This document shows positions 12,701-43,860 of a DNA stretch of 64,000 bases, piece after piece. The position numbers were made by a program, and so were the translations under genes. The DNA comes from Dendrobates tinctorius (taxonomy: Eukaryota): contig NW_027361695.1 in NCBI RefSeq assembly GCF_039654945.1, positions 11,904,001 through 11,968,000 on the forward strand. The letters are read 5' to 3'. Positions within the stretch are counted from its first letter, which is position 1. Each line of letters opens with the position of its first letter. The notes under the pieces are model-generated. The model saw nothing but the letters and a program-made list of their open reading frames with translations, made no database searches and had not been told where the DNA came from.

Positions 12701-15700
12701 AGTTGGATCAACTTATCTCTGACTCCACAGGAGGAAAGAGCGGGTTTCTCCCTCAACAAAAGGTCAAAACGCTTTTTCATCACCCGTTTCAGGCACGTTT
12801 TCGGGCCTTTTCGCAACCACGGGTGGACTACAGCGGCCATTTCCGCGGCCTCAGGCCACCCCAACCAGGATAGGGAGCGTCAGGTCTCATATAGAGCCAA
12901 CCCATTGGGGAGAATGCGTACTCAGCAGCCCAGATCGAGGGAATCCAGATCCCAAAGATCATCGGCCAAATGACTCGAGGCCTTTACCAGATGACACCAG
13001 CAAGGGGGCGGTCGCCTACTCTGGTTTCACCACGTCTGGGTCAATGTCGCTCACGATGCATGGGTAAAGGAATTGGTGGCCTCCGGTTACAAAATAGAAT
13101 TTGTCAGATACCCTCCAAGACGGTTTTTTCTTTCCCGGCTTCCCAGGGTGGATACCCAGGCAAGGGCTGTATTGGGAGCCATCAAATCGCTCCAGCACAA
13201 TGGAGTCATTGTTCTAGTGCCGGAACACGAAAGCTCAGGGGTTCTATTCCAACCTTTATGCGGTTCCCAAAAAGGACGGGTCTGTCAGGCCTGTTTTGGA
13301 CCTGAAGCTTCTGAACAAATTCATCAGGATCAGACATTTCCAGATGGAGTCTCTCCGTTCAGTCATATCGGCCATGGAGCAGGGAGAATACTTGGCCTCA
13401 ATAGACATCCAGGACGCATATCTGCATATTCCCACTTTTCCTCCTCATCAGAGGTTTCTACGCTTCGCCACCAGCGATCAACATTTTCAGTTCGTAGCGC
13501 TACCCTTCGGGCTAGCCACGGCTCCCAGAGTGTTCACAGAGGTTATGGCAGTTGTCATGGCCATACTGCATTCTCGAGGCATAAGTCGTCTTGCCTTTTC
13601 TGGACAACCTCTTGGTCAAGGGCTCGTCAATACGGGCATGCGAGGGAAATGTCAACATCACGCTAGATACTCTTGCCCGATTAGGATGGTTGGTCAATGC
13701 GAAGAAGTCATCCCTTGTGCCAGCTCAGAGGATCTCCTTCCGAGGAATGAGCTTTGACACTTGCCGAGGGTTAGTAATTCTCCCTCAGGAAAAGGCGCTA
13801 GCTCTCCGGCAGGGAGTCCGGACACTTCGCCAACCAGTCCCTCGTACCATCCGATCCGGGATGAGGATTCTAGGGAAAATGGTGGCAGCAATGGAAGCGA
13901 TACCTTTCGCCCAGTTCCATCTTCGCCCCCTGCAGCGCGCCCTCTTGTCAGCCAGGGACAAGAAGAATCCTTTCACGCTCGATCGGCGGTGCCGACTGTC
14001 CTCTCAAGTCGGGCAGTCGCTCGGATGGTGGATAACCAGTTCCTCTCTGGCCCAGGGGAAACCTTTCCCCCCAGATCATTGGCCGGTAATGACAATCGAC
14101 GCCAGTCTCCTCGGCTGGGGAGCGATGTTTCGCCACCACACAACCCAGGGACGGTGGTCACCACAGGAGGCACGCCTCCCGATAAACTTAATGGAGATAC
14201 GAACAATTCGGCTGGCTCTGCAGAAGTTTCATCACTTTCTAGCAGGCCGCCCCGTCCGGATTCAATCGGACAACGCCACGGCGGTGCCTTACATAAATCA
14301 CTAGGGGGGCACCCGCAGCAGAGCAACCAGGCGTGAGGTGGGGCACGTTTTTTTCAGGGGGCCGAAGCAAACCACTCGGTGATTTCGGCTGTCCACATCC
14401 CGGGCGTGGAAAATTGGGCGGCAGACTTTCTCAGCCTGCAGTGTTGTGAGTTCATTTTCCCCTTCACTACTGAGGCCCGAGGAACTCCCTCTTCTGGTAA
14501 AGAAAGGTAGTGAGCCTGATTATCAAACACCTGAGTCTGATGATGATGACTGGCTGAGTGGAGTTACTGACTGGATATAAGGCTGACGACGCCCTTCTGC
14601 CCTGTGGGTGATTTCTCTGTGGGATCCTTGGAGACCAGTCTGAATTCCTGCTCCTCTAAAGCTAAGTTTTCTGCTCGGCCTTTTGCATTTGTGCTTAGAC
14701 TTTGTTTTGCTTTGTTTTTCTGGATTTCTGCCATTCCCTGCTGGGGTATGCTGAATTCCTTTAGCTCTGTCTTCTGAAAATACTTGAGTGCTGATTTAGT
14801 TTTTGAAGCCTAACTGCTTCAGGGTCTTTTTCATATCAGCTTGTTGGCTTATGTCTTTGAAAGGGTTTTGGCAGATTGCAGACAGCAACCTTCCTTTCCT
14901 GTTCTGTTTAGCTAGCTTGGGCCCCATCGTTTGCTCAGCCTATCTTTCTATCTGTGTGAGTGTTTTTTCATCTTGCTTCACCGTCATTATATGTTGGGGG
15001 CTGCCTTTTACTTTGGGGTCTGCTCTGGGGCAGTTTAGATTTCCTTTTCTGTCTTTAGGCTATTTAGCGCTCCGGCTGTGTTCGAGGGGTCTAGGGCATC
15101 GTAGGAACCCCCCACGGCTACTGCTAGTTGTGTTGATAGGTTCAGGGGTCTGCAATCTGATAGTTGCCAACTTCTCTGGTTTTCTGGACGTAGCTTCTAT
15201 TTTTGTGTCTGCCTCCTACGGTGACTCAATCATAACAGAATCACCCGCCATACCGCAGATCCTAGGGTACTCAATAGCAGGAAAGAATTGTAAAAAAAAA
15301 AAAAAGTGTGTATATTTTTTCCTCTATATCTCTGAGGCCGTAGGGGGAATTTTTTTTCTCTCAATGGAGATAAAGCAATTGTCTGATCGTGTGGAGCAGC
15401 TCGCTGCGGAAGTGCGGGGAATTTCCGCCTACCTTGCTCATTCACATGCTGCTGAACCAAAGATTCCTACACCTGATGTATTTTTTGGGGATCGGTCTAA
15501 ATTTTTGAATTTCAAAAATAATTGTAAATTATTTTTTGCCTTGAAGCCTAACTCGTCAGGGAGCTCCGTGCAGCAGGTTAAAATTGTCATCTCTTTGCTG
15601 CGTGGCGATCCCCAGGATTGGGCGTTTTCTTTGAAACCAGATGATCCTATTCTGACTAATGTGAACGCATTTTTTCAGGCCTTGGGGTTGTTGTATGACG

Positions 15701-18700
15701 AACCTAATGCCATTGATCAGGCTGAAAAGACCCTGCTGGCATTGAACCAGGGTCGTGATTCTGCAGAATTGTACTGTCAAAAATTCCGAAAGTGGGCAGT
15801 ACTTACTACCTGGAATGATAATGCCTTGGCTGCTCTCTTTCGGAAAGGGTTGTCAGAAGCCGTAAAAGATACTATGGTGGGATTTCCTGTTCCCTCTGGT
15901 CTTGACGATTCTATGTCATTAGCCATTCAGGTTGATCGGCGTTTGCGCGAACGCAAAGCTGCTCGAGAGGTGTTGCCACCTGTTGAACAAATGTCTGAAC
16001 CTATGCAATGTGATAGAGTTTTTTCCAGAGAGCAGCGTCAGGAGTTCAGAAGGCGTAATAAGTTGTGTTTTTTCTGTGGAGATGCCTCGCATATTATTTC
16101 TGTCTGTCCTAAACGAGAGAAACGCTTTGCACACACTTTTTCTGTTGGTGGTGTTCAACCTAAGTTTCTTCTGGCTATTACTCTGATCTGCTCCCTGTCC
16201 ACATTTTCCGCCAAGGCTTTTGTGGATTCGGGAGCAGCCCTAAACCTAATGGACTTGGATTTTGCTAAACGTTGTGGATTTCCGATGACACCTCTGCAGA
16301 CGCCTATCCCTTTGAGGGGGATTGATGCTACTCCTTTGGCTAAAAATAAACCTCAGTTTTGGACCCAGGTGGTAATGCGGGTCGCCCCAGACCATCAAGA
16401 AAATTGCAGATTTTTGGTGTTGCATAATCTGCATGATACAATTGTTCTGGGGTTTCCCTGGTTACAAATTCATAATCCAGTTTTGGATTGGAAATCTGTG
16501 TCTGTGGTGAGTTGGGGTTGTCGGTGTGCCTTTAGTGAGGCTCCGGTGTTTTCCACCTCTCCTCAGTCGCATGATGTTCCTGATTATTTGGCGGACTTTT
16601 ATGATGTATTTAGTGAGAATGAGTCTGCGTCTCTGCCTCCTCATAGGAGTTATGACTGTGCAATTGAACTGAGCCCGGGGTGTAAATTTCCCAAGGGTCG
16701 GCTCTTCAATCTATCTGTACCCGAGCACGAGGCTATGCGATCCTATATTAAGGAGGCGTTGGAGAAGGGTCATATTAGACCATCCTCGTCACCCTTAGGT
16801 GCCGGTTTTTTTTTTGTAGCCAAAAAGGATGGATCATTAAGACCTTGTATTGATTATCGTGCCCTCAACAAAATTACTGTTAAATATCAGTATCCGTTAC
16901 CCCTGATTTCTGATCTATTCTCCAGAGTTAAAGGTGCTTGCTGGTTTACCAAGCTTGACCTCAGGGGGGCGTATAATCTTATTCGCATTAAGCATGGGGA
17001 TGAATGGAAGACGGCGTTTAATACTCCGGAGGGACATTTTGAGTACCTGGTGATGCCTTTTGGGCTCACTAATGCCCCTTCTGTCTTCCAGTGCTTCATG
17101 AACGATATTTTCCGAGATTTTGTCGATAAATTTTTGATTATCTATCTGGATGATATTTTGATCTTCTCCAAGGATTGGGATTCTCATGTGGAACATATTC
17201 GGACTGTGTTCCAGATCTTGAGGGAGAATTCCCTGTATGTCAAAGGATCTAAATGCCTTTTTGGAGTACAGAGGATTTCTTTTTTGGGATTTATTTTGTC
17301 CCCGTAAACTATTGAAATGGACCCGGCCAAGGTACAGGCCATTTATGATTGGGTTCATCCCACTTCTTTGAAGGCCCTCCAGAAGTTTTTGGGTTTTGCT
17401 AATTTTTATCGGAAATTTATAGCAAAATTTTCTAGTATTGCCAAGCCATTGACTGATTTGACTAAGAAGGGTGCTGATGTGTTAAATTGGTCTCCGGAGG
17501 CTGTTTCTTCCTTTCAGGAGCTGAAGCGAAGATTCACCTCCGCCCCGGTTTTGCGGCAACCTGATGTCTCACCTCCGTTCCAGGTAGAGGTGGATGCTTC
17601 TGAGATTGGTGCAGGAGCTGTTTTGTCCCAAAAGGATCCTGTAACATCTAAAATGAATCCCTGTGCTTTCTTTTCCCGAAAGTTCTCTCCATCTGAACGT
17701 AACTATGATGTGGGGAATCGGGAACTGTTGGCCATGAAATGGGCATTTGAGGAGTGGAGACATTGGTTGGAGGGAGCTAAGCATCAAGTCGTGGTCCTCA
17801 CTGACCACAAGAATTTGATTTACCTAGAGTCGGCTAAGCGCTTGAACCCTAGACAGGCTAGGTGGGCCTTGTTTTTTACACGTTTTGATTTTGTGGTTTC
17901 TTTTCTTCCTGGAACTAAGAATGTCAAGGCAGACGCCCTCTCTAGGAGCTTCTTTGCTGATTCTCCTGTGGTGACCAAGCCTGCTACCATCTTAGGCGAA
18001 GGGGTAGTTCTTTTTGCCATCTCGCCCGATTTGAGACGTGCTCTGGAAGAGTTCCAGGAGGACAAACCTGAGCGTTGTCCCAGTGGAAAGTTGTATGTTC
18101 CTGACCAGTGGAAGAAGAGAGTGATGTCTGAAGTTCATTGCTCTGCTTTGGCTGGTCATCCAGGTATTTTTGGTACTAGAGATCTAGTGAGTCGGTCTTT
18201 TTGGTGGCCCTCCTTGTCTCGTGATGTCAGGAATTTTGTGCAGTCCTGTGGGACGTGCTCCCGGTCTAAATCGTGTTCTCGCTCTAGTGGGTTGTTGATG
18301 CCTTTGCCTGTCCCCAAGAGGCCATGGACCCATATTTCAATGGATTTCATCTCTGATATGCCTGTCTCTCAAAGGATGACTGTTATTTGGGTGATTTGTG
18401 ATAGGTTCTCTAAGATGGTTCATCTTGTACCACTCCCTAAGTTGCCGTCTTCCTCTGAGTTGGTGCCCCTGTTTTTACAATAGGTGGTTCGCTTGCACGG
18501 GATTCCTGAGAACATTGTATCTGACAGAGGAGTCCAGTTTGTGTCTAGATTTTGGAGAACTTTCTGTTCCAAGCTGGGAATTCAGTTGTCCTTCTCCTCT
18601 GCTTTTCACCCTCAGACCAATGGGCAGACAGAGAGAACAAACCAGACTTTGGAGTCATATTTGAGATGTTTTATTTCTGCTGATCAGGATGATTGGGTTT

Positions 18701-21700
18701 CATTTTTGCCCTTGGCCGAATCTGCTTTAAATAATAGAGCTAGTTCTGCCACTTTGATGTCACCTTTTTTTTTGTAACTTTGGGTTTCATCCTCGATTTT
18801 CTTCAGGGCAGGTGGAGCCCTCTGCCTGCCCAGGTGTTGACACTGTGGTGGAGAGAATGCACCAGATCTGGGACCAAGTGGTGGATAAGTTATCTCTCTC
18901 CCAGGAAAAGGCCCAGCGGTTTTCCAACCGACATAGGACCATTGGTCCCCAGTTTAAGGTTGGTGATATGGTGTGGTTATCATCAAAAAATATTGCTTTG
19001 AAGGTGGCTTCTCCTAAGTTTAAGCCTAGATTTATTGGACCTTACAAGATTTTGGAGATTATTAATCCAGTCTCTTTTCGTTTGGCTCTTCCTGTCACAT
19101 TTAAAATCCATAATGTGTTCCATAAATCTTTGTTGAAGAGGTTTGTTGAACCTGTTGTTCCGGGGGTGGCACCTCCAGACCCTGTATTGGTTGAAGGTAA
19201 CATGGAATATGAGGTAGAGAAAGTACTGGATTCCCATCTGGCTAGACGGAGACTCCAGTATTTGGTTAAGTGGAAGGGTTATGGTCAGGAGGATAATTCC
19301 TGGGTCTCTGCCTCTGATATTCATGCCAAAAGATTGGTGCGTGCCTTTCATCGGGCTCACCCTGATCGCCCTGGTGGCGTGGTGGAGGGTTCGGTGACCC
19401 CTCCTCAAGGGGGAGGTACTGTTGTGAGTTCATTTTCCCCTTCACTACTGAGCCCCGAGGAACTCCCTCTTCTTGTAAAGAAAGGTAGTGAGCCTGATTA
19501 TCAAACACCTGAGTCTGATGATGATGACTGGCTGAGTGGAGTTACTGACTGGATATAAGGCTGCCGACGCCCTTCTGCCCTGCGGGTGATTTCTCTGTGG
19601 GATCCTTGGAGACCAGTCTGAATTCCTGCTCCTCTAAAGCTAAGTTTTCTGCTCGGCCTTTTGCATTTGTGCTTAGACTTTGTTTTGCTTTGTTTTTCTG
19701 GATTTCTGCCATTCCCTGCTGGGGTATGCTGAATTCCTTTAGCTCTGTCTTCTGAAAATACTTGAGTGCTGATTTAGTTTTTGAAGCCTAACTGCTTCAG
19801 GGTCTTTTTCATATCAGCTTGTTGGCTTATGTCTTTGAAAGGGTTTTGGCAGATTGCAGACAGCAACCTTCCTTTCCTGTTCTGTTTAGCTAGCTTGGGC
19901 CCCATCGTTTGCTCAGCCTATCTTTCTATCTGTGTGAGTGTTTTTTCATCTTGCTTCACCGTCATTATATGTTGGGGGCTGCCTTTTACTTTGGGGTCTG
20001 CTCTGGGGCAGTTTAGATTTCCTTTTCTGTCTTTAGGCTATTTAGCGCTCCGGCTGTGATCGAGGGGTCTAGGGCATCATAGGAACCCCCCACGGCTACT
20101 GCTAGTTGTGTTGATAGGTTCAGGGGTCTGCAATCTGATAGTTGCCAACTTCTCTGGTTTTCTGGACGTAGCTTCTATTTTTGTGTCTGCCTCCTACGGT
20201 GACTCAATCATAACACTGCAGGGTCTTGCATCCGGAGAGTGGTCTCTACATCCTGAAGTTTTTCAGCAGATTTGTCAACTGTGGGGAGCTCCGGATGTGG
20301 ACCTGATGGCTTCCAGAGTGAATGCCAAGGTCCCCACATACGTCACTCGGGCCAGGGACCCGCAGGCATTCGTGGTGGACGCGTTGGTTCTGCCATGGAT
20401 CCAGTTTCGCCTCCCATATCTATTTCCCCCACTGCCACTACTTCCGAGAGTCATCAAAAGGATCAAGACGGAAGGGGTGCCGGAGATTCTGCTGACACCA
20501 GACTGGCCCCGTCGAGAGTGGTACGCAGATCTAATGCAGCTGCTCGCCGACATTCCTTGGCGCCTGCCAGAGCGCCCAGATCTACTGTCTCAAGGGACGA
20601 TTTGTCACCCGAACTCAGGGACCCTGTGTTTTGACGGCATGGCCGTTGGGTCTTGGATTCTAACCCAGGCAGGGTTCGGGAGCGAGGTGGTCGCTACAAT
20701 GATTAGCGCCCGGAAGCCTGCTTCAGCACGAATTTACCACCACACCTGGAAGGTGTTCTTTGCTTGGTGTCGAGGCCGCGGTGTTTCTCCTCAGAGATAC
20801 TCGATCCCCATCATCTTGGCTTTTTTCCAGTCGGGCTTAGACTCGGGCCTTACCCCAAGTTCCCTCAGGAGACAAATATGGGCCTTATCCGTCCTGTTCC
20901 AGTGCAGAATTGCTACCAATTTGCAGGTGAAGACTTTCATTCAGGGAGTCTCCCACTTGGTACCTCCCTATAAGGCGCCTATGGACGCCTGGGACCTTAA
21001 CATGGTCCTAAGTGTTCTCCAGGAAGCTCCATTTGAACCGCTTCAGGATATCTCTTTAAGATACCTTTCCTGGAAAGTGGTGTTCCTAGTGGCCATCACT
21101 TCCATCAGGCGGGTTTCAGAGCTGGCGGCCCTATCCTGCCAAGCTCCGTTCCTCACTTTCCATAAGGATAAGGAGGTCATCAGACCAGCCCCTCCTTTTC
21201 TGCCCAAAGTGGTGTCCTCTTTTCACCTTAATGAAGATGTGGTTTTGCCTTCATTTTGTCCAGCATCGGTGCACCGTGTGGAAAAGGCTCTTCACACGTT
21301 AGACCTGGTAAGAGCCAGAGGTACGTGTCGCGGACGGCACCCTTTCGTCAGACGGACACGCTGTTTGTGCTCCCCGAAGGGCGCAGGAAGGGACTCGCTG
21401 CCTCAAAATCGACCATAGCCAGATGGATTCGTTTGACTATTCAGGAGTCCTAGAATCATAGAATCATAGAATCGTAGAGTTGGAAGGGACTTCCTGGGCC
21501 ATCTGGTCCAACCCCCTGCTCAAAGCAGGATTCGCTAAATCATCCCAGTCAGATGTCTGTCCAGCCTCTGTTTGAAGACTTCCATTGAAGGAGAACTCAC
21601 CACTTCTCGTGGCAGCTTGTTCCACTCATAGATCACTCTAACTGTCAAAAAGTGTTTTCTAATATCTAATCTGTGTCTCATTAGAGGCATGCCGATTCCA

Positions 21701-27192: not shown

Positions 27193-27500
27193 TAGTGATG
27201 AACAAACATGTTTGGATAGGGTGTTATCTGAGTATGCTCGAGTTCTAACAGAGTGTCTTTGACTTGCTCGAAAAATATGTTCGAGTCCCTGCGGCTGCAT
27301 TTCTCACAGATGTTCAACAGCTGCAACACATGCAGGGATTGTCTAACAGCCAATCCCTGCATATGTTTTTGCTGTCGGAACAGCCGCGAGAAATGCAGCC
27401 GCGGGGACTCAAACATGTTTTTTGAGCACGCTGAAGTCACTCTGTTAGTACCCAAGCATGCTCAGGTAACACCTTATCCCAGCACGTTCGCTTATCACGA
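27193..27500. mobile_element. hAT-like MITE
   Basis: Homologous to 8341-8600; palindromic. Confidence 0.65.
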
Positions 27501-30073: not shown

Positions 30074-30749
30074 CCGCACACAGATTCAGCTGTGCTACAA
30101 AATTTCTGTTATATTCCAAAAAATGCAGTAGTTATCCTCTTGTTTCAGTGGTAATTTAGAATATATGAGGCTTTTATCACACACATTTTTAGTTCTGTAT
30201 TCTGTCCATAAAGAGTAGTGGTAATAGGTTAAGGAGGAGCTAGATGATCCAGCTGTAATCTTTGGGAAATGTTGTACCCCAGGTGTAAGGAGAGACAGAT
30301 TGCCAACCTGATGAAGGCCATAATCTAGAGTGGAAACGTAACAGTTTACTAATATAAATGGATTTTGTGTTGTACAGTTTTTCAGATTTTCTTCCTCTAC
30401 TGGGAGATCGGGAGGTAAACCATCAGACCTATTTTTTTATCCTAATTCTGACATCCTTGAGTAGATATTTTAGTTTCAGCCATAGACTACGTGGCCTTTT
30501 TAAACGGGAATTTCGAGATCAAGAAAAGGGTTTCCTTTTTTTCCCCACCAAATAAGAGCAGCATTCTTAAGCATAGTTATTTTCTGATATTGTAGTTCAG
30601 CTTTGTGAAAATGAATGAAGCTGAGATGTAATACCAGATACAACCCATAGACAAGCATTGGACCTTAGAGGGAAGCTGTCGACATGGTTTTATATGTGGG
30701 AAGTAGCTGCATGACTACTAGATTGGTTCTTGTTCCCCGATAGCAATGA

Positions 30750-30958
30750 TACCTTTTTTGTAGAGATCCGATGTGCCAATCATAAGAAATGTACCGTAGA
30801 AGCAATATGCAAATCAGGCTGAAAGTGCACTGTGGAGGAGGTGTGTCAGTGCACATAGACTGCTTGGACACACCCCAGTGCACTTCCAGCCTGATTTGCA
30901 CATTGCTTCTACTGTAGATTTCTCATGATTGGCACATCGTATCGCTACAAAAAAGGCG
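30750..30958. mobile_element. Palindromic MITE core
   Basis: ccttttttgtagagatccgatgtgccaatc...gattggcacatcgtatcgctacaaaaaagg inverted arms of ~80 bp. Confidence 0.6.
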
Positions 30959-31268
30959 TCATTTTTAGTGGAAGCCAAGCAGCTATACGTGCTGATAATT
31001 TAGACACCACAGCTGTTATTTCAGACACTGGAGCCATTTATTTGCCCGCGAATCGCGTTCCCTTCCACTTATTCGTCGCAGTTCACATGAAACGGTATAA
31101 ATAATGAGCCGCAGCGGGTGATTATTAGTTTGGTTTTTCGCTCCACTTTATTTGATGCTGTAATTGAGCCTGTCACATAACCAAGGGACCGCAATCAAGA
31201 TCCAGGTTATCATCACTGCCGGGGGAGGAGGATGAAACTTTCCATGTGACGTCGAAGATAATGATCCT

Positions 31269-31466
31269 CTAGTAACAGCAGCAGATACAAGGGAAGCAAA
31301 CGTTCTTAAATTTGTACTTTCTCGTGTTCTTTTTGGAGATTTTCTGAAACTGCTTAGAACATTGAAGTATTTCGTCCCCGAGAGATTCGCACTCCCGCAG
31401 CTCCTCGTGTCGCTGCGCCAGGAGTTTACTGGACTTGTCTGCAATCGTTTCGATTAGATCATCGAC
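31269..31466 (-). CDS. C3orf49: C3orf49 exon 5 (terminal; SNARE-like helix + CFPCICCCY*)
   Basis: ccag|GTC GAT GAT...TGT TAC TAG; minus-strand AATAAA at 31147-31152. Confidence 0.9.
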   Translation of the reverse strand, partial: VDDLIETIADKSSKLLAQRHEELRECESLGDEILQCSKQFQKISKKNTRKYKFKNVCFPCICCCY

Positions 31467-34400
31467 CTGGAATTGGAAATCAAGGATCAGATGCTGTGAC
31501 GGTCATGAAAATTCAACGGTTGCACCGATGCAGACCGCTTTATATAGACAGTGCGCATAAATGGCTGAACATTATATTGAAATTGTATTATCTTGTAGTG
31601 ATCTCCATTTGGAGGGTGTATCTTCTTTAAAACCCATAGAAAAGCCTGTTCTTGGTGTCCTTATCCCTCATAACCAAATAAAACTGCATTTAGTACAAAA
31701 AACTGTCTACTATGTCCTGAGACTGTCCCAATTCTCATGCGCTGAGACTCGCCAGCTATTGTTTCTGATTGGGTGGTTCCACTTCATCAGAATTCTGCCA
31801 GCACAATCAGTGCAGGAACGTCCTTATCTCAACTTCCCAGCAGCTGCTAAGCCTGCCATTGTCTAATATCTTGCCTAACCTGAACTGAAAGCCAAACTCC
31901 TTTTTATTATGTCTTTTTTCTGTCTCATCTTTCTGGTTTGTTTGTTTTTTGGCTGCTGGGCCGAGAACATCTGGATAATGAAAATTACATCCATCCTCGT
32001 TAGTGCGCAAGCCTAAAAAATGAGGATTGAAAAAATAAACTGGTGTAAAACTTGTACAAAAGCCTTAAAAGTGAATTTGATGTAAACTGAAAAATGTAAT
32101 GTTTTTAGAGGTAAAGTAAATTATAAATTAAGCGATTTGCAGATTGTTTTTCACATGATCAATCAAATTAGATCAAGTTGTCCGAAAGTGAAGAGACCAC
32201 TTCCTAAAGCTGGCTCTCTTTGATGCACGGGGTGAGGATAATTGTCAATTTCTTGGTCTACACAGAAGGTACAGTTAGGTCCATATATATTTGGACAGAG
32301 GCAACATTTTTCTAATTTTGGTTCTAGACATTACCACAATGAATTTTAAGCAAAACAATTCAGATGCAGTTGAAGTTCAGACTTTCAGCTTTCATTTGAG
32401 GGTATCCACATTAAAATTGGATGAAGGGTTTAGGAGTTTCAGCTCCTTAACATGTGCGACCCTGTTTTTAAAGGGACCAAAAGTAATTGGACAGATTAAA
32501 TAATTGTACATAAAATGTTCATTTCTAGTACTTGGTTGAAAACCCTTTGTTGGCAATGACTGCCTGAAGTCTTGAACTCATGGACATCACCAGCCGCTGT
32601 GTTTCCTCCTTTTTGATGCTCTGCCAGGCCTTCACTGTGGTGGTTTTCAGTTGCTGTTTGTTTGTGGGCCTTTCTGTCTGAAGTTTAGTCTTTAACAAGT
32701 GAAATGCATGCTCAATTGGGTTGAGATCGGGTGACTGACTTGGCCATTCAAGAATATTCCACTTCTTTGCTTTAATAAACTCCTGGGTTGCTTTGGCTTT
32801 ATGCTTTGGGTCATTGTCCATCTGTAGTATGAAACGACGACCAATCAGTTTGGCTGCATTTGGCTGGATCTGAGCACACAGTATGGCTCTGAATACCTCA
32901 GAATTCATTCGGCTGCTTCTGTCCTGTGTCACATCATCAATAAACACTAGTGACCCAGTGCCACTGGCAGCCATTCATGCCCAAGCCATCACACTGCATC
33001 CGCCGTGTTTTACACATGGTGTGGTATGCTTTGGATCATGTGCTGTACCACGCCTTCGCCATACTTTTCTCTTTCCGTCATTCTGGTAGAGGTTGATCTT
33101 GCCTTCATCTGTCCAAAGAATGTTCTTCCAGAACTGTGCTGGCTTTTTTAGATGTTTTTGAGCAAAGTCCAGTCTAGCCTTTTGATTCTTGATGCTTATA
33201 TGAGTGGCTTGCACCGTGCAGTGTACCCTCTATATTTACTTTCATGCCGTCTTCTCTTTATGGTAGATTTGGATATTGATACGCCTACCTCCTGGAGAGT
33301 GTTGGTCACTTGGTTGGCTGTTGTGAAGGGATTTCTCTTCACCATAGAGACTATTCTGCGATCATCCACCACTGTTGTCTTCCGTGGGCGCCCAGGTCTT
33401 TTTGCATTGATGAGTTCACCAGTGCTTTCTTTCTTTCTCAGGATGTACCAAACTGTAGATATTGCCACTCCTTATGTTGTAGCAATTTTTCGGATGGGTT
33501 TTTTCTGTTTTTGCAGCTTAAGGATGACTTGTTTCACCTGCATGGAGAGCTCGTTTGACCGCTTGTTTCTTTCACAGCAAAACCTTCCAAATGCAAGCAC
33601 CACACCTCAAATCAACTCCAGGCCTTTTATCTGCTTAATTGAGAATGACATAACGAAGGGATTGCCCACACCTGTCCATGAAATAGCCTTGGAGTCAATT
33701 GTCCAATTACTTTTGGTCCCTTTAAAAACAGGGTGGCACATGTTAAGGAGCTTAAACTCCTAAACCATTCATCCAATTTTAATGTGGATACCCTCAAATG
33801 AAAGCTGAAAGTCTGAACTTCAACTGCATCTGAATTGTTTTGTTTAAAATTCATTGTGGTAATGTCTAGAACCAAAATTAGAAAAATGTTGTCTCTGTCC
33901 AAATATATATATGGACCTAACTGTAAATCTCCAGCAGGGGATGCTAGGATTTCATTCTTGTATCCTACAGAATTCTGTGAATGCATCTTTAGACTGTGAT
34001 TGCCTTCTATTACAATTTAGAGGGTTATTTCCATTTTTTAGAATGTATCACCTATCTATAGAATCTGTGCTAACTTGCTGATTGATGGGGGTTCGACAGC
34101 TGGGACCCTCAGCAATCACAGTAGTTATGGTTATATAGGAGTGTTACAAGAAGAAGCAGGATAAATAATCATCCATTGAATTCAGTGGCTGCCGTTCCAC
34201 CCAGCGTCACTCATTTATGTTTTCATTTTATGGGGTCTTAGGTGGAAGTCATAGCCAAACATCCCCGAAGGAATCGTCAAAAACTCAGCTGACCTCCCAG
34301 ACACAGCAGTCATGTGCATCACTCCCTACATTTCCAGGATAACTGTGCAGCTTGTTATGTATTCTTGTGTCATTGTAGTGAAGTTCTGTTCATGGTCGGC

Positions 34401-37400
34401 AGGCAGCTCTTAACAGGAACACCTGAAGAGGATTACTGTATTACTGTCCTTATCATTTTCTCTTGGCTTTGTATTTTGTGCAAAGCCTTTATGAGTGAAG
34501 AAGTGCCACAACTACATTTTCATATTTTTTTTTATGAGGCACTACATTTGGTGCCTTCAAGTGTGTTTGGATAACCCTTCTTATAATTTTCTTTCTGGCT
34601 TTGCACTTTGTAGAGAGCTATTACGAGTGTAGGAGTACCACAACTACACTGTATTCACAACATTTGAATGAGGTTCTACAGTTGGTGCCTTCAATGGTGT
34701 ATTGATGACTCTGCTTGTAATTTTTGGCAGGCTTTGCACTTAGTGCATAGCTTTTATGGGTCTAGGAGTACCACTACAGGACAATTTGAACCTAATGTGA
34801 ATGAAGCCCTCCTTTATGTCTAATACACGGTGTATCTGAGTCCCTCTTCCATCTAATTTCGTCAGCTCTTGCTTCCTTCATAAATTACACTGAAATTTCC
34901 AATTGTTTAATGAAAATTAATAAAAATTAATAAAAAATCAAATTTGGTTTCACTAAATTATTATTTTTTAATTATTTAATTTTTTCCTTTTATACAAGTC
35001 ATTATACGAGAAGGAATGTTTCTTAACATCTTTTTTCCTGTAAACTCCAATTTCTTGTTGATTTTGAATGTTTTATTGTCAGTCCTTAAAGTGGAAGAAA
35101 AGTATGACACCATTGCTCTCAGCAGCGATGTGGGAGTCAGAGATGCTTCCAGGCGTCTTACCCATGCTTTTCTCCTTCCATTCAGCAATTTTTCCATCCA
35201 TTTCAACATTTTTACAGCCCCCCCAGTCCTCTTTCTAGGGTCTACCAGAAAAATGATCACATTTCTCATTGATTCCCATTACTCAAAACGAGCCTCCGAG
35301 CATTTTAGTGCTCGCTCATCTCTAGTAAGAAGTACCTGCGTCTGCAGACTGCCGACTGTGTACTCAGACTGATGTTTCACCTTGTCTATGGCTTTCTTCT
35401 TCCTTTTAACCAGAGCAAATTGCCTTTTTTTGGATGAATATGACCCCTAGAAAAAAGTAATACAATTACATATCTAAAACATGTATGTGTGCAATGCATG
35501 TGTGCACGAGCAGTCAGGCGGGCAACGTTCTCCTATATGAATATGCCAAAAATGTTTTATGTTGGTTTATAATGGCAAGCAGTACCATCTGCAGTCTACA
35601 GGTGGCGCTACATTCCCTTTATATGCTATTGCCCTTATACTGGCGGGGTTTACATTTGGAGTAGGTTTTTTTTATACATTTTTCCACCTGTTACAGTTTG
35701 TTTGTAGGGAGCTTTTTGTCATAGATTTTTGGAGCAGATTGTGCTCTATAACACACATGAAAAAAATACTTTTTGAATAATCTTCCTATTTATATCAAAT
35801 GGGCAATATGAGAAATATGCTTGTAGTGCACATGGTACCGTTTTTGTCCACATTTGTTTTAGTGTGGAAAAAAAAAGCAATCTGGGTATGTGCACATTTT
35901 CTTTGCGGAGAATTTCGGAGCATAAACTGAGCAGAATCTTAAGTTTTTGAGGAGTTGTGATTTTTTGACGAGAATTTGGAGAGAGTTTGTTCTACAAAAG
36001 CTATGAAAAAAAACTCAAGTTATTTAAATAATTTAAAAAAAAAACACGGTATGGGGACCCCTCTATTCTTGACAACCAGCCTTGCTGAAGCTGACAGCTG
36101 AGGGTTGCAGCCCCCAGCTGTGAGTTTTTCCTGGCTGGTTATAGAAAATACTAGGGAACACACGCCAGATTATTTATTTATTTACAGGTGAGTGGCGGGT
36201 GATGAATACTTCCATCAGCCGCTCCTGCTCTCACTGATATTACCAGCTGCGGGTGTACGCTGATGGAAGTAATAATTCCATCAGCTGCCGCCTGCTCTCA
36301 CTGGTATTAGCGGCAGCAGGTGCATGCCGATGGGAGTAATAGTCGAATAGTAATAGTTGAATATAACTCTCATCATTCTCTTTCTGCTCGCGCTGATCGC
36401 CGGCAGAACATAGGAGAATGATGCGATCCATCTTCAGCACCTGGCGCCGGAGAACAGCGCTAACAGTACTGCAGCTTCTCAGGTGCTGGTACATGTGGTA
36501 CTGATGCGGCACGCGGGCACCATATGGTTGCCACACGTGCGCTGCAAGTATTACACACGGACACTGACATCTCCGGTACCATTTTTTTTCTGGATACTCC
36601 TGGAAAAAAAAAGGATCTCATAATTGTAAAGTATGGCATTGTTTTTTACATACATTTCCATCCTGGGACTAGCTTTACAATCAATTACAGCAGGAACACG
36701 GAGGAACATTCACTGCAGGAAATGATTTCCACCATGAATTAGCTGTGTCGGTTCCTATCGTCAGCAGCATGTGTTGGAGAATATGGCTGACTTCTCCTGA
36801 TTATATCCCAGGGATGGACACCTGACAAGAATGAAATCAGAGCTGTACCTTCTGTAGACCTGCGGGCAGCGAGGTGACAGACACTCGCCTGGTGGTTTTC
36901 TTGGAGCGCACTATCACTTTGTCCGTGGTGATCCACTCCGTCTCTGCCTCTACAACATGAACATCCAGTTGAAGAATTGCTTTCAAAGAAAAACAACAAG
37001 TAAATCTGAATATGTAAGACTATGTCTCCTCTCCAGGTGAACTGTCAGCTCCATCATTAAAGGAGACACTAAGAGTAGATTCATTATTACATTTGCGCTT
37101 TTTTTTTTTTGTTGCTAATTTTGATGTTTTCCGCCTGTTTTTCATTTGCACCTTAGACTACGTTCCCACGGTGAGTATCTGGTGCGTTTCCGATGTTGCA
37201 GTTTTAGGTAAAATAGGTTACTTACGTTTTTTTAATTGAAATTACACAGTGTAAAAAAATCACCCAAAAATTATCTTGGAAATGTAGACTTCTTTTTATT
37301 TGGGTCTTTTTATGTGTTCCTTATAAAAATAGATAAAAGAGAAAAAGAAGAACTCACCATCCCTTAGGCGGTAAGGGCAGACAGCAGTAGAAATCGGACT

Positions 37401-40400
37401 GAGACTCGACCTTAATGCACGGACTGGCCGGCGGCTCTCCCCACCCAAGCGTGACAGCTTCATATATTTCTATGCAGCTGTCACACTGAGGACGGGAGAG
37501 CCGCCGGCCAGTCCGTGCATTATGGTCCAATCTCGATCTCATGTATATGGCACCCTTAAAATGAGTCCTTTATTGCTTAACGTAGAAGCCATAGAAACTG
37601 GTTGCAGGGGAATACGGGTAGCGTGAGGACTATGGTCGTTTCGCGTTATACCAATGATTCTTCCAGTCCTGGTGCGTGCTTCTTTTTCTCTTTTATTTAT
37701 TTGGATTTATTTTTGTACACGGTATCTTAAGAAGGTAGTACCACAACACCTTGTTATTTTATGTGGTCACCCTTGTATCATTTCTTTATGTTCTTCAGTA
37801 TAGGCAATAATTGGGGTTTACCATTCCCAAATTTTTCAGTCTTTCAAAGCCACAACTCGTCTTGAAAAAAAATGGAAAAATAAAAAAAACCTCCATAATG
37901 ACATATTGACGGAAAAATAAAAATAAAATTACGTCACCTCTGAAAAGGGAGGGAAAAAACTAAAAAGCAAAAAAAAAAAAAAAAAAAAAAAATTGCCCTC
38001 TCATGACTTGGAAAAAAGCTGGATCATACAAGGGGAAGATTTAACAAAGATGGGTCAAAGGAAAAATGGAGCAAAATTCCTGTAATAACAGGTTAGGTTG
38101 CTGCTTTTAAGGACACCTAAAAACAAGAGCTGGAATCTGATTGGGCGTGAGATTCCATCGACTTTTCCGGGATTCTATGAGTTTTCCTGGAAATGAGCAG
38201 GAATGTGATGGACAATACATTCTGTGCACATAGTTTACATGTTTGTCCCTGCTAGACAGATGTAGCCGACATAGCCTAAATGACATTTGTACATTTTTCT
38301 TACCAGCTCGTGAGATCCTCCTTCCTGACCCCTTGACTCTTTCCCGTGGGAGTGCGAGGTGTTGAATCATTTTAGGAAGATGATGCCGTTTGTGGGACAT
38401 CACCAGTGACTCATTTCTAGAAGACGCAGCCTGTAGGACGTTCACATGCTTGGCTTCTTTTATTCTGGTGGTTAGCACTTTATCCATAAAAATTTTCACC
38501 TTTTGCCCAAGACTTTTTTTTTTGTGTTCTCGGGTCATGGAGGATTCCGACTCGCTGTCACTTGATAGTTCTTCGTTGGGGACAAGGACTTTTTGGTTTA
38601 GTAGGTTGGTTGAGACAGCTCCATGCCACCTGCATGAAGAGTATCATGAGTGATGGTTTCCAGGAGAGTATACAGCCATACTATTGTAATTAGTCAGTTA
38701 TAAATGATAGTTAAGAAATTAATTTCAGGAAGATTCGCTCAATTTGGCTGGAGGATCAGATTCGGTCCAAATCAATGTTGCGAAAAGACGTTTGTTATGC
38801 TCTGACCCCAAGGTTGATGCCAGAGATTGGCCACGTGGGGGTGATGCATGTCGCTGATGTCAATAACGTGCGTGACCCCTTCCCACTTGACCTGGAAGTA
38901 TTGGAGACCAACATGGAGGACACGAGAACGGCAGAGGCGGCATATGGACGGGTGATGTGCTTTATCTTCTTCTTAACCCCTTTCCAATCCATCAAAATAA
39001 GATCGCAAATTGCTCACTGACTGGTTGCCATTTTGCTGGATGTGTGCGAATCAAATGCCAAAAATTTCATAATTTTCAGAATCCAAAATTTTGGGGAAAA
39101 TTTAAACAAATATGATTTGTTGATTCACTAATCTCTAGGTAAGATCTTCATATACCGAAAGAAAAATATAAGAAAAATATTTCAAATTGGGCCAGTAGTG
39201 CTACAGTATAACCAAACCCATCGGTGCTGATGGATATCTATAGGGCCCAAGAGTACGCTTACGGGCCAGGGTTACATTTTGATCTTATGTAAAAAATGAC
39301 CATAACAATTGGGTAATCTGTTGTCCAAAAGTTAAGCAGCCGGCAGTTTTCACACGGTCACCCAATGCCTACGTTATTCTTCCCATCTGTCCAATTCAGT
39401 GCTGACTGCTTCAATGGCATACATCCATAGTAAAAAAAATGTATGGGGGCCACAATGAGGGACATCATTAGGCTATGGAGCCACATTAGAGGACATTATT
39501 AGGATATGGGGCCACAACTGGGGACATTATTAGGTTATGGAGCCACAATGGTTGACATTAAGGTATAGGGCTACAATGAAGGACAATATTAGGGTGGGGT
39601 GCTACAATGGAGGATATTATTAGGGTATGAGGCCACATGGGGGACATTAAGGTATAGGGCTACAATGAAGGACAATATTAGGGTGGGGTGCTACAATGGA
39701 GGATATTATTAGGGTATGAGGCCACAATGGGGGACATTAAGGTATAGGGCTACAATGAAGGACAATATTAGGGTGGGGTGCTACAATGGAGGATATTATT
39801 AGGGTATGAGGCCACAATGGGGGACATTAAGGTATAGGGCTACAATGAAGGACAATATTAGGGTGGGGTGCTACAATGGGGATATTATTAGGGTATAGGA
39901 AAAAAATATTTTTTCCTTCATCGTCGGAGTCTGAGACTGGGACTGCGTCGCGCGGATGATACTTATGAACAAGGTGCAAGGCATTTTGGTGAGCTGACTT
40001 TCCTTATTTCCCCTTTCTGTTTTTTAGTATTATTAGAGTATGCACCGACCTCTGCACCTAGGAGTAGGGGCCACAGCGCGCGGGAAATCGGTTAGTTGCT
40101 GCGGGAACGTGCAGCACGCAGGAGGGTAGTGTCAGGGCTCCTGCAGAGAAGCCAACTGCCAGAGCGGGCCTAAACCAGCAGAGGCTAAAATCCGCTATCA
40201 GAGACTGCCGACAGCAATGTACCTGGTCCCATCACTGACTGTGAGTGGCAGGACACCCAGTCAGGACATAAGCGCCGGCATGCACCAAAGGGAGAATTGG
40301 GACACCCACTGTGAGGGGTTTCCCTTTATACCTGACTGGAGTCACTCATTGTCCCTGTACGCTGACAGGGGGAAAGACTGTGCTCTGCCCGGCTCGTCGT

Positions 40401-41229
40401 TTCCTGACACACCGATCACCGACCGGACCACGAGGAATCACTGTCACCGTCAAGAGCCAAGACATAATCTTTTCCAGGACTACACCAGACCACGAGGAAT
40501 CACCGCAGCCAGGATCCAGGACGCTATCTTTTCTAGGACCATACCTGACCCCTTACACGCCACAGCTTTGGCGCCAAGTCCACATCCTGAACAAACCGCA
40601 TTCTGAAGTCGTCGGACTGATAAGTTTGCTATTCTTGAACTTTCTACCCTATTCTTCACACCCGTTTCACCTGAGCTACGTACCCTGTGTACCTTTATAC
40701 TGTTTTCCCTGTTTTCTCCCTGTGAGGAGTATACCTGTTAAATTAAACCCCACGTTAACCCTTGCTTTGCCTCCGCCCCTTTACTGCACCTGCTCACAAT
40801 TACACAATGGATGACATTAGGGTATAAGGTCACAATGGGGGACAATATCAGGGTATGGGACCAAAATGAAGGATATTATAAGGGTATGGGGCCACAATGT
40901 GGAACATTGTTAATGTATGAGGGCACAGTTGGGGACATTATTAGGGTATGGAGCCACAATGGGGATCATTATTATGGTATAGAAGTACAATGGGGGACAT
41001 TATCGGTCCGACAGCTATATAAGGTGTCTGTCCAGCCTAACTGTAGTGCAAAGTACACAAAATTGGACCTTTTTTGATCATCTTTGCCTGAGGTCAGCAT
41101 CGACCATTAGTATTACCTGATAATGCCTTTTCGTTTCGTCTGAGAAGAACGGCCCTTGTTTGCCTGGGATCCTTTGCCGCTCTTCTTGATAAGGGCCTGA
41201 GACTCCGATGCCTTCGGCTTTGGTTCCAT
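31269..41229 (-). CDS. C3orf49: C3orf49 homologue, complete gene, complement join(41117..41229,38304..38629,36849..36979,35336..35446,31269..31466), 292 aa, C-terminal R-SNARE-like coiled coil
   Basis: 113+326+131+111+198 = 879 nt, GT-AG and phase-consistent. Motifs KRKGIIRWHGAVSTNLL, RRVSVTSLPAGLQK and VDDLIETIADKSSKLLAQRHEEL match C3orf49 as recalled; convergent with THOC7 as in mammals. Confidence 0.88.
32272..33923 (-). mobile_element. Tc1 (DD34E) transposon, full length, transposase disrupted
   Basis: TA|CAGTTAGGTCC...GGACCTAACTG|TA with ~220-bp TIRs; WTDE, DNDPKH, SPDLNPIE; stop at 32975 and frameshift ~33200. Confidence 0.95.
35336..35446 (-). CDS. C3orf49: C3orf49 exon 4
   Basis: ctag|GGG TCA TAT...ACG CAG|gtac; GSYSSKKRQFALVKRKKKAIDKVKHQSEYTVGSLQTQ. 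Confidence 0.87.
36849..36979 (-). CDS. C3orf49: C3orf49 exon 3
   Basis: aag|CA ATT CTT CAA...CAG AAG|gtac; ILQLDVHVVEAETEWITTDKVIVRSKKTTRRVSVTSLPAGLQK. Confidence 0.87.
38304..38629 (-). CDS. C3orf49: C3orf49 exon 2
   Basis: gcag|G TGG CAT GGA...CGA GCT G|gtaag; overlaps ORF 38107..38538. Confidence 0.85.
39440..41005. repeat. ~31-33-bp minisatellite interrupted (39900-40803) by an LTR-like fragment
   Basis: gccacaatggggacattattagggtat units on both sides. The insert ends ATTAAA...gctcacaattacaca like an LTR U5; its 5' end is not recognisable. Confidence 0.6.
41117..41229 (-). CDS. C3orf49: C3orf49 exon 1 (MEPKPKASES...TKRKGII)
   Basis: ATG at 41229 with an in-frame upstream TGA; donor AG|gtaat; joins exon 2 as R-W-H. 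Confidence 0.78.
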
Positions 41230-41858: not shown

Positions 41859-43860
41859 AAAGGGAATTTGTTAGTAGGATTTCGCCCCCTGAACTAATTT
41901 TATATGCACATGTAACTTTTTTTTAAAGATAATTCCAGGAATACATTTACATGACCAGTCCTTTCCTCCATTACTGAGAAATTAGAGTTTGAATTGATAT
42001 GCAAATGAGGCTGAAGCAGTGGCGTAACTACAAAGTTATGGACCCCGGTGCGAACTTTCAAATGGGGCCCCCCCATGCCAAAATACACGCACATCTTTGC
42101 TCCGTACACCTCGTACACACACGGCTCCGCTCCGTACACCTCGTACACACACGGCTCCTCTCCGTACACCTCGTACTCACGCGGCTTCGCTCCGTACACC
42201 TCGTACACACGCGGCTCCACTCCGTACACCTCGTACACACGCGGCTCCACTCCGTACACCTCGTACACACGCGGCTCCGCTCCGTGCACCTCGTACACGC
42301 TACTCCACACACCTCGTACACACACGGCTCCATACACCTCGTACACACACGGCTCCACTCCGTACACCTCGTACACACGCGGCTCCGCTCCGTACACCTC
42401 GTACACACGTGGCTCTGTTCCGTACACCTCGTACACACGCGGCTCTGCTCACCTCGTACACACACAACTCCGCTCCGTACACCTCGTACGCACACGACTC
42501 CGCTCCGTACACCTCATACACACGCAGCTCCGCTCCGTACACCTCGTACACACGTGGCTCCACACACCCCGTATACACACGGCTCCGCTCCGTACACCTC
42601 GTACACATGCGGCTCCGCTACGTACACCTCGTACACACGCGGCTCTGCTCCGCACACCTCGTACCCACACGGCTCCACACACCTCTTACACACACGGCTC
42701 CATACACCTCGTACACACATGGCTCCGCTCCATACACCTCGTACACACGCGGCTCCACACACCCCGTATACACACGGCTCCGCTCCGTACACCTCGTTCA
42801 CACACGGCTCCGCTCCATACACCTCGTACACACGCGGCTCCACACACCCCGTATACACACGGCTCCGCTCCGTACACCTCGTACACATGCGGCTCCACAC
42901 ACCCCGTATACACACGGCTCCGCTCCGTACACCTCGTACACACGCGGCTCCGTTCTGTACACCTCGTACACACATGGCTCCACTCCGTACACCTCATACA
43001 CACACGTCTCCGCTCCGTACACCTCGTACACACAAGGCCCTGCTCCGTACACCTCGTACCCACACGGCTCCGCTCCATACACCTTGTACACACACAGCTC
43101 CGCTCTGCACACCCCATACACACACATCTTCGCTCCATACACCTCGTACACACACAGCTCTGCTACATCCACCCTGTAAACCCCTCCTGACCCCACACAG
43201 AAACTTCCCCTCATCCAGCATCATGACAACCAGCACAGCAGAGTCCTGCAGCCACAGAGGCCCCTGATCATGTGGCCCCTGACTTCTCCCCTCCTGTGAC
43301 CTCATCACCGGTCCTGTGCACACAGAAAAGGACTTCATTGCAGACTGTGGGGGGCTGGCTGCGGTGAGTCTATATGGGAGGGCGAAGATGGGGTGCATGG
43401 GTGGCAGTGGCGGCTCAGTGCGGGACGCGGGGGGGAGTCAAAAACAGGACTATCCCGCGAGAATCGGCACGGTTGGGAGATATCACGGTCTGACCTGCCG
43501 GGCCCTTGACCCCCCCTGGGCCCAGCGACCGTGGTAGTTACGCCCCTGGGCTGAAGAACTATGGTAGATCTGAAGCCTCTGTCACTCCAGCTCTATTCCT
43601 GTCCCAGCATCACCTCCTCCTGCTGCTTGACTGACGTCTCTTTAGCCAGAAGTCACATGACATAGAGTCTGTCATTCAAGGAGGAGGCGCTGGGCAGGAA
43701 ATAGAGTTGGAGTGACAGAGGCTTTAGATCTGCTATAGTCCTTCAGCCTCATTTGTATATCAATTCAAACACAGATTTCTCAGTAACGGAGGAACGAACC
43801 GGCCATGTAAAGGTATTGCTAGACTTGTCTTTGAAAGAGCTACATGCACATAACAGTATA
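41859..43860. mobile_element. T2/Kolobok-like MITE (aaagggaat...) hosting a hAT insertion
   Basis: 41900-42016 is inverted at 43740-43850; internal palindrome 43557-43750. Confidence 0.6.
42017..43548. mobile_element. Non-autonomous hAT element carrying a ~30-bp minisatellite (42095-43165)
   Basis: TIRs CAGTGGCGTAACTAC / GTAGTTACGCCCCTG; exact 8-bp TSD GGCTGAAG (42009-42016, 43549-43556). Confidence 0.92.

Follow-up and report, generated by a model that had tools for sequence, protein, structure and literature searches.

The window analyzed here comprises 64,000 nucleotides of the genome of Dendrobates tinctorius (contig NW_027361695.1) and includes a run of N at 63283-63717. Its minus strand carries this frog's C3orf49 orthologue (Pfam PF28264; Gm11100 in mouse). 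The coding sequence (CDS) comprises five GT-AG exons that extend from 41229 to 31269 and splice to 879 nt, and its translation matches, in all 292 residues, the protein listed by NCBI as 'putative uncharacterized protein C3orf49 homolog'. The gene had been named as C3orf49 in a preliminary description of the locus, and the five-exon model agrees with this. That description delimited the feature as 31269-35360, a span that holds the whole of exon 5 but, of exon 4, just the final 25 bases, with the gene reaching 41229; it also counted five junctions, whereas a CDS with five exons has four. The exon model and the span 41229-31269 refer to coding exons. PF28264 is annotated on the frog protein and about 120 homologues, and its name derives from an Atlas cluster titled 'Predicted gene 11100'. 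In Callorhinchus, C3orf49 retains THOC7 as a neighbor and has an intron at the identical position after exon 4; conserved neighbors were sought within the 64-kb frog window, where only transposon ORFs were found.

Coding exon 1 (41117..41229, minus strand) encodes Met1 to the first bases of Arg38, is basic and predicted to be disordered, and was assigned by the splicing match, its GT donor, and a tblastn match of 100%. Coding exon 2 (38304..38629, minus strand; splicing match and tblastn) contains the motif RWHGAVSTNL, an acidic Ser-rich stretch, and a basic low-complexity region, which AF2 models mostly as coil with a pLDDT < 60. Coding exon 3 (36849..36979, minus strand; splicing match and family conservation) carries a block that ranks second in conservation within the family and includes the invariant RRxS serine S180 at 36879-36881, and AF2 models residues 150-180 as a beta hairpin with low confidence. 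Collectively, the N-terminal ~220 residues form a strongly basic, mostly disordered region that contains the invariant RRxS site, and the full protein has a pI of 10.1 with 61 K+R in 292 residues.

Coding exon 4 (35336..35446, minus strand; splicing match and AF2) encodes a polybasic linker followed, from V221 (35354-35356), by SNARE layers -7 and -6; it ends in GSLQTQ at 35336, where a GT donor opens a phase-0 intron. The acceptor AG of this intron is at 31467-31468. Coding exon 5 (31269..31466, minus strand; translation and splicing match) encodes the SNARE core, a juxtamembrane linker, and a Cys tail, and its translation runs from VDDLIE through CICCCY to a TAG stop (31269-31271). Together with the splice sites, this reproduces the C-terminal peptide quoted in the preliminary description. 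Layers -5 to +8 of the SNARE motif (V228 to N274) occupy 31326..31466 on the minus strand and form, with 35336-35356, one helix; this assignment draws on AF2, on profile alignments to VAMP8 and VAMP2, and on the position of conserved columns at layers. AF2 models the helix as a single confident unit (residues 221-279, pLDDT 88-97). Within it, Q245-R246 (31410..31415, minus strand) comprise an extra residue and the zero-layer arginine, as placed by the HMMER gap and by family counts. The linker RKYKFKN (31302..31322, minus strand) is basic and aromatic and is the counterpart of RKYWWKN in VAMP2 in an ungapped alignment to VAMP2 and VAMP8. The tail CFPCICCCY (31272..31298, minus strand; C284, C287, C289-C291) is a predicted S-acylation site based on its translation, its conservation from lamprey to mammals, and its analogy to syntaxin 11.

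Judged from profile comparisons, the last 72 residues of frog C3orf49 share homology with brevin-type R-SNAREs. The profile built from the C-terminal domain of the C3orf49 family matched VAMP8 (E 1.1e-8), VAMP2 (1.6e-6), VAMP4 (2.9e-4), VAMP7 (9e-4), and Snc1 (1.7e-3) in the PDB. The best 16 solved-structure matches were all R-SNAREs (16/16), the next match had an E of 0.059, and no Q-SNARE had an E < 1 among the PDB matches. The Pfam Synaptobrevin model (PF00957) matched 21 of 22 C3orf49 members (best 1e-7), and Amia, at 27.9 bits, and Callorhinchus, at 28.1-28.3 bits, exceeded its curated cutoff of 26.4 bits, whereas the frog protein alone fell under it (20.4 bits over the full length, E 4.5e-4; 23.1 bits for the domain). 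A single-sequence phmmer search of the PDB with the frog protein yielded an E of 0.16. Thus, the resemblance of the lone frog sequence to VAMPs is only suggestive, whereas at the family level it is far beyond chance. The ESM Atlas clusters nearest to C3orf49 are Synaptobrevin clusters. Four short fragments of C3orf49 were all that a word search with the C3orf49 domain alignment recovered, with no VAMPs among them.

These results uphold the R-SNARE helix that had been proposed by eye: it is a genuine R-SNARE (brevin) motif. At the sequence level, nothing was found of what the preliminary description had named as speaking against its proposal, such as a lack of profile matches to R-SNAREs or of conservation of the Arg and the Cys tail. 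It had also supposed that databases might already note the coiled-coil homology, and several orthologues do carry the automatic UniRef name 'V-SNARE coiled-coil homology domain-containing protein'. A v-SNARE homology domain is already flagged by automatic naming in UniProt, Pfam 38 includes a family 'C3orf49', and the literature searched contained no link between C3orf49 and SNAREs.

Conservation was counted across 159 C3orf49 family sequences, from lamprey to mammals. HMMER aligns R246 with the zero-layer Arg of VAMPs, and the layer-0 residue is R in 155/159, K in 3/159, and C in 1/159. The extra residue ahead of this Arg, noted previously from a manual alignment, is conserved across vertebrates: HMMER places exactly one additional residue directly ahead of the Arg, all C3orf49 members have this insertion between layers -1 and 0, and the inserted residue is Gln in 144 of the 159 sequences. 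The heptad register from -7 to +8 is thus not uninterrupted, although the flanking layers otherwise correspond to VAMP positions. Columns of lowest entropy coincide with layers +1, +2, +3, +5, and +6, and also with -1, -4, -5, and -6 in a register shifted by one; layer +8 is non-hydrophobic. The most conserved part of the protein is the VAMP-like C-terminal half (layers +1 to +7) together with the linker, which argues for force-coupled, membrane-proximal pairing over a soluble decoy. We know of no working R-SNARE with a register skip at the ionic layer.

The tail holds five Cys among nine residues, as the preliminary description had pointed out, in the place of a TM helix. Only ten residues (V283 and the nine-residue Cys tail) follow the KN of the linker, and there is no C-terminal TM anchor. 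The tail is present in nearly all full-length family models, with the pattern C-x-x-C-x-C-C-C from lamprey through mammals and with ends that read CCC, CCCF, CCCY, or CC. A conserved CaaX box is absent from orthologue tails, many of which terminate in CCC. No longin domain was detected by Pfam, and AF2 gives no folded N-terminal domain. Ykt6-like prenylation, one of two anchoring modes suggested earlier, is therefore unlikely, and with the conserved CaaX box missing we set it aside as the anchor. Given the lack of a TM helix, a longin domain, and a conserved CaaX, S-acylation of the kind known in syntaxin 11 and 19 is the likely anchor by analogy. Syntaxin 11 has no TM domain, and its S-acylated C-terminal Cys-rich region is required for membrane association and function (PMC4049605).

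Homologues named C3orf49 were identified in lamprey, chimaera, rays, bowfin, lungfish, amphibians, squamates, and mammals, and the family is so far vertebrate-only among the matches found. Among the matches listed there were none from birds or clupeocephalan teleosts, and turtle models, which are flagged as low quality, have Lys at layer 0; C3orf49 is therefore dispensable in some lineages. Several mammalian gene models leave out the tail, exiting their exon at KN|V, and a human predicted isoform retains both motif and tail. Contigs from a related frog are colinear from the 3' UTR, through the codons of the Cys tail, to 80 nt inside the intron, although their origin from RNA is a guess; they are unspliced at KN|V and offer no proof of expression. 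As regards selection, each of the three differences that they show in exon 5 is synonymous, and one of these falls in the codon for Arg246. The exon 4-exon 5 junction was not among the joints listed in the putative RNA contigs. In one primate single-cell study, C3orf49 is listed as a marker of notochord/nucleus pulposus cells.

Our favored interpretation, which we consider somewhat probable, is that C3orf49 is a membrane-anchored brevin-type R-SNARE that has an S-acylated Cys tail and zippers with Q-SNAREs. The polybasic linker would carry the Cys tail to the membrane, where DHHC enzymes may S-acylate several of its cysteines in the manner of syntaxin 11/19 and SNAP-25. Once anchored, the helix could then zipper with Qa, Qb, and Qc SNAREs to form a four-helix bundle, with R246 of helix 221-279 presumably at the ionic layer. 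Q245, between layers -1 and 0, would constitute a one-residue heptad skip, which is expected to slow or gate N- to C-terminal zippering. Counting against this reading are the sub-cutoff Pfam score of the frog protein, the skip at the ionic layer, the non-hydrophobic layer +8, a report of nucleolar human protein, the tail-less mammalian models, the absence of the gene from some lineages, and the behavior of SNAREs with lipid anchors in a single leaflet. The gene model, the orthology, the R-SNARE homology, and the conservation of Arg, skip, and tail are shown directly, whereas lipidation, partners, and a driving or restraining role in fusion are points that we infer. In its strongest form, the proposal would make C3orf49 a working vertebrate R-SNARE outside of the accepted inventory that is multiply palmitoylated, uses the Gln-Arg skip as a zippering gate, and serves a specialized fusion step, perhaps in vacuolated notochord/nucleus pulposus cells; we view this extended form as speculative and rather doubtful.

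An inhibitory or clamping R-SNARE is a possible, if unlikely, alternative, in which the anchored protein binds Q-SNAREs but the skip and a lipid confined to one leaflet keep zippering from completing or force from being transferred, such that acceptor complexes are blocked. The conserved skip residue and the loss of the gene from some lineages are both compatible with a clamp. In classic tests, SNAREs held by lipid in one leaflet did not bring about liposome fusion or were inhibitory to exocytosis, behaving as fusion-incompetent or dominant inhibitory proteins both in vitro and in yeast cells (PMC2185554, PMC2192637). However, syntaxin 11 is functional with a Cys-rich anchor (PMC4049605), and a decoy could do without a tightly conserved linker of the VAMP type and without conservation of the C-terminal half. 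Tomosyn and amisyn, which are known decoys, are soluble, and a soluble decoy of that type, which had been raised in the preliminary description, does not fit the conservation of the juxtamembrane linker and anchor.

It is slightly less likely again that C3orf49 derives from a SNARE and no longer acts as one, being instead a basic nuclear or nucleolar coiled coil whose helix serves other oligomerization and whose Cys cluster is a metal-binding or redox-active site. Its high pI, K+R content, and disordered N-terminal part would suit such a role, and over-expressed human C3orf49 was targeted to nucleoli rather than membranes in a preprint whose available passages give neither isoform nor tag (10.1101/2023.03.09.531820). 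Over-expressed, highly basic proteins are, in our judgment, often nucleolar, and a tag or a tail-less isoform would also block anchoring. Moreover, conservation tracks the R-SNARE layers, including the Arg and the small residues at +3, +5, and +7, and the geometry of linker and anchor is of the VAMP type. A chance likeness of an ordinary coiled coil to synaptobrevin is highly improbable: the weak single-sequence scores (in the PDB and under the Pfam cutoff) would allow it, but the register, the Arg, the Phe at +6, and the linker all match VAMPs. We rejected it given the family profile E of 1e-8, the exclusive presence of R-SNAREs at the top of the matches, and passage of the Pfam cutoff in several orthologues.

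To our knowledge, the vertebrate SNARE set has been regarded as complete for about two decades, and a conserved brevin-like gene that lacks a functional literature would extend it. C3orf49 may be an unstudied membrane-fusion protein common to vertebrates, from lamprey to mammals. If so, it would offer a natural test in an old dispute as to whether a TM helix is required for SNARE-driven fusion or lipid anchors are sufficient, and the one-residue skip beside the ionic-layer Arg would be a simple, mutable feature with which to probe zippering past the zero layer. Since the gene is present in humans and mouse (Gm11100), knock-outs and biochemistry are straightforward.

Among known systems, VAMP8/endobrevin and VAMP2/synaptobrevin 2 (PF00957) share with C3orf49 a homologous SNARE helix that has Arg in the zero layer, small residues at +3, +5, and +7, Phe at +6, a basic/aromatic juxtamembrane linker that ends in KN, and a disordered, non-longin N-terminus. 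Unlike these VAMPs, C3orf49 has a nine-residue Cys cluster and no TM helix, one residue more between layers -1 and 0, a far longer basic N-terminal region (about 220 aa), a conserved Cys at layer +2, and a non-hydrophobic layer +8. Ykt6 is likewise a lipid-attached R-SNARE without a TM helix, and the anchor of C3orf49 is putatively lipid, but Ykt6 combines a longin domain with a farnesylation/palmitoylation box of the CCaaX type, both of which C3orf49 lacks. Tomosyn and amisyn also carry a VAMP-like helix beyond the classic VAMP set, and C3orf49 may share their regulatory character, whereas they have WD40 or PH domains and neither juxtamembrane linker nor anchor. Zhou et al. reportedly worked in 2013 with engineered lipid-anchored SNAREs that have a synaptobrevin-type helix. 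Such a helix, with lipid in place of the TM segment, is also a feature of other engineered lipid-anchored SNAREs (McNew 2000, PMC2185554; Grote 2000, PMC2192637); these are laboratory constructs, of which C3orf49 would be a natural version conserved in vertebrates. In syntaxin 11 and 19, as in C3orf49, a SNARE motif is followed by a Cys-rich tail that replaces the TM domain, but these are Q-SNAREs with a Habc domain and a tail that is S-acylated. By analogy, C3orf49 would be their R-SNARE counterpart.

The gene lies on the minus strand as five coding exons (41229-41117, 38629-38304, 36979-36849, 35446-35336, and 31466-31269), and splicing these reproduces P0154, a D. tinctorius protein that a word search with full-length alignment identified as 'putative uncharacterized protein C3orf49 homolog.' The joined exons comprise 879 nt, their translation is identical to P0154, and every intron is GT-AG. 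This exact match assigns the window to D. tinctorius. The last codons of the fourth exon read GSLQTQ, with a GT donor directly after 35336; an AG acceptor adjoins 31466, and minus-strand translation of 31269-31466 yields VDDLIE...KFKN...CFPCICCCY followed by TAG, with Cys at five of the last nine residues. The preliminary description of this C-terminal peptide and its five-Cys tail was therefore accurate, although the coding sequence has four junctions rather than the five it had counted.

Within the window, the only neighbors of the gene are transposon ORFs. Ty3/gypsy-type LTR retroelement ORFs (14803-19555) encode gag, protease, RT, RNase H, integrase, and a chromodomain, and are preceded by an ORF with a LAP2alpha-like match (12013-12870; whole region 12013-19555). 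A 30-nt unit repeated 37 times forms a minisatellite (42099-43164) located ~870 nt 5' of the start codon, which gives long spurious ORFs on both strands. Intron 4 harbors a degenerate, TA-flanked Tc1/mariner copy with terminal inverted repeats (32270-33925) and a DDE_3 ORF fragment (32525-32971, minus strand). In a 2554-nt contig from a related organism, 32268 is contiguous with 33923, an empty site indicating that this insertion is lineage-specific.

Taken singly, the frog sequence scores weakly as an R-SNARE, whereas the family-level signal is clear. Pfam Synaptobrevin scored the exon at 18.7 bits, the full protein at 20.4, and the domain at 23.1, all below the curated cutoff of 26.4 bits; in a phmmer search of PDB the E-value reached 0.16, and the six top matches were all VAMP2. 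A profile of 22 C-terminal domains of the family matched PDB chains of VAMP8 (1.1e-8), VAMP2 (1.6e-6), VAMP4 (2.9e-4), endobrevin (rat VAMP8; 6.6e-4), VAMP7 (9.3e-4), and yeast Snc1 (1.7e-3). All 16 best matches were R-SNAREs, an unrelated protein first appeared at E 0.059, and neither syntaxin nor SNAP-25 chains were found at E < 1. Chance similarity to synaptobrevin was rejected on the VAMP8 value and the identity of these 16 matches. Pfam Synaptobrevin matched 21 of the 22 family members (best 1e-7) and its cutoff was surpassed by Amia (27.9 bits) and Callorhinchus (28.1-28.3 bits), while the closest ESM Atlas clusters to the domain were Synaptobrevin clusters. The R-SNARE relationship proposed from the frog sequence is thus significant at the level of the family. 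Several orthologs are named 'V-SNARE coiled-coil homology domain-containing protein' in UniRef, so the homology is also visible to an automatic domain profile.

With positions numbered from the zero-layer Arg (R246 = 0), the C-terminal half of the motif aligns with VAMPs without gaps. Layers +1 to +7 are occupied by L (+4), C (+7), G (+11), I (+14), S (+18), F (+21), and S (+25), including the small residues at layers +3, +5, and +7 that mark R-SNAREs, and these columns are among those of lowest entropy in 136 weighted sequences; layer +8 is non-hydrophobic and variable. The linker RKYKFKN shares columns with RKYWWKN of VAMP2. N-terminal of R246, hydrophobic residues (-4, -11, -15, -18, -22, and -25) occupy VAMP2 layer positions offset by one, with LL at -4/-3 corresponding to VL of VAMP2, which places an extra residue between layers -1 and 0; in the HMMER alignment the gap falls at Q245. 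Both the Arg and the one-residue insertion remarked on earlier are conserved: Arg is present in 155 of 159 family sequences (replaced by K in three turtle models and by C in one), and the preceding column is Q in 144/159. The skip before the Arg is a family trait.

A query with the 65-aa exon matched 33 proteins among 1.84 billion representatives, with the domain C-terminal in all. Homologs named C3orf49 at source come from lamprey, chimaera, sharks/rays, sturgeon, gar, bowfin, eels, mormyrids, and lungfish, and from salamanders, caecilians, frogs, squamates, a turtle, and many mammals. None of those listed is from birds or clupeocephalan teleosts, which suggests loss of the gene in both. Pfam 38 includes the family as PF28264 ('C3orf49'), and its ESM Atlas cluster is named 'Predicted gene 11100,' which we take to be mouse Gm11100. 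THOC7 lies tail to tail with the Callorhinchus milii gene, 1.9 kb apart (L001:10001-21951, the locus in that genome). The last exon there opens with VD, directly behind a Q codon, and includes both the Cys tail and the stop; the intron before it sits at the codon boundary Q|VD in Callorhinchus and frog alike.

Ten residues follow KN, too few for a TM helix, in the pattern x-C-x-x-C-x-C-C-C(-x). This pattern is common to lamprey, cartilaginous fishes, ray-finned fishes, amphibians, reptiles, and mammals. Ykt6-like prenylation, one of the anchors proposed earlier, is argued against by the absence of a conserved CaaX box, many orthologs ending in CCC or CC. Rab-type motifs require a Rab fold. Syntaxin 11 is without a TM domain and depends on an S-acylated Cys-rich end (PMC4049605), and by analogy the tail is best read as a putative S-acylation site.

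Some models exit the last exon at KN|V into unrelated, non-conserved sequence (killer whale, seals, cat, mole, wolverine, macaque, proboscis monkey, and gibbon). The Val codon after KN (31299-31304) serves as an alternative splice donor in several mammals, giving models without the Cys tail; the same site in this frog, AAC|GTTTGC, is by eye a poor donor. The Ranitomeya imitator gene model P0002 exits at KFKN|V into a repeat family with copies in the window whose translation matches the extension (30596-30956, 27201-27489, 8349-8597, and 57624-57732), and the extension looks transposon-derived. Because alternative ends vary by lineage and the Cys tail has been kept for ~500 million years, we take the tail-bearing form to be the one under selection, although mammals may also have a soluble isoform. 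Among the matches listed from public runs, which are contigs only, no spliced joint was found. Related-frog contigs are colinear through the tail codons (30903-31546 and 31051-31553) and differ in exon 5 at three positions (31296, 31323, and 31410), all synonymous and one in the Arg246 codon; the flanks show ~2x the density of changes and an indel.

An AF2 model of P0154, run with 53 orthologs, has a single confident element, a helix at 221-279 (pLDDT 88-97). Everything N-terminal of it falls below about pLDDT 60, including a weak helix (78-91) and a low-confidence beta hairpin (150-180). The hairpin region (36849-36979, residues about 147-190) ranks second in conservation among the blocks of the protein and could serve as a binding element or regulatory phosphosite; S180 (36879-36881), the serine of an RRxS invariant in the family, is a likely kinase site.

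With moderate confidence, we propose that C3orf49 is an S-acylated, membrane-tethered R-SNARE of the brevin type. S-acylation of the tail would tether the helix to a membrane, and the tethered protein would pair with Q-SNAREs, close to the membrane because the C-terminal layers and linker are conserved, with the one-residue skip at the ionic layer acting as a gate. The same S-acylated molecule might instead act as a clamp, which we consider unlikely; the skip at the ionic layer is consistent with this, as are classic tests in which lipid-anchored SNAREs were non-fusing or inhibitory (PMC2185554, PMC2192637).

A nuclear or nucleolar protein of basic composition could also have re-used a SNARE-derived helix. 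The frog protein is very basic (pI 10.1), and a preprint describes nucleolar targeting of expressed human C3orf49 (10.1101/2023.03.09.531820); we regard this re-use as unlikely, too. In the searched literature C3orf49 is named by nineteen papers, in gene lists or screens throughout; a proteomics preprint includes the human protein among those changed, and a monkey single-cell study reports it as a marker with TBXT and KRT19 of a cluster dominated by nucleus pulposus cells. No paper in that literature combines C3orf49 with SNAREs, and nothing relevant was found for Gm11100. The domain is thus already flagged by automatic annotation and unstudied in the literature searched.

Collectively, the S-acylated R-SNARE that we favor would be anchored like syntaxin 11/19 and SNAP-25 and unlike Ykt6. 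C3orf49 is homologous to brevins and is predicted to work like them, although two hallmarks of that group, an unbroken register and a TM anchor, are missing from it.
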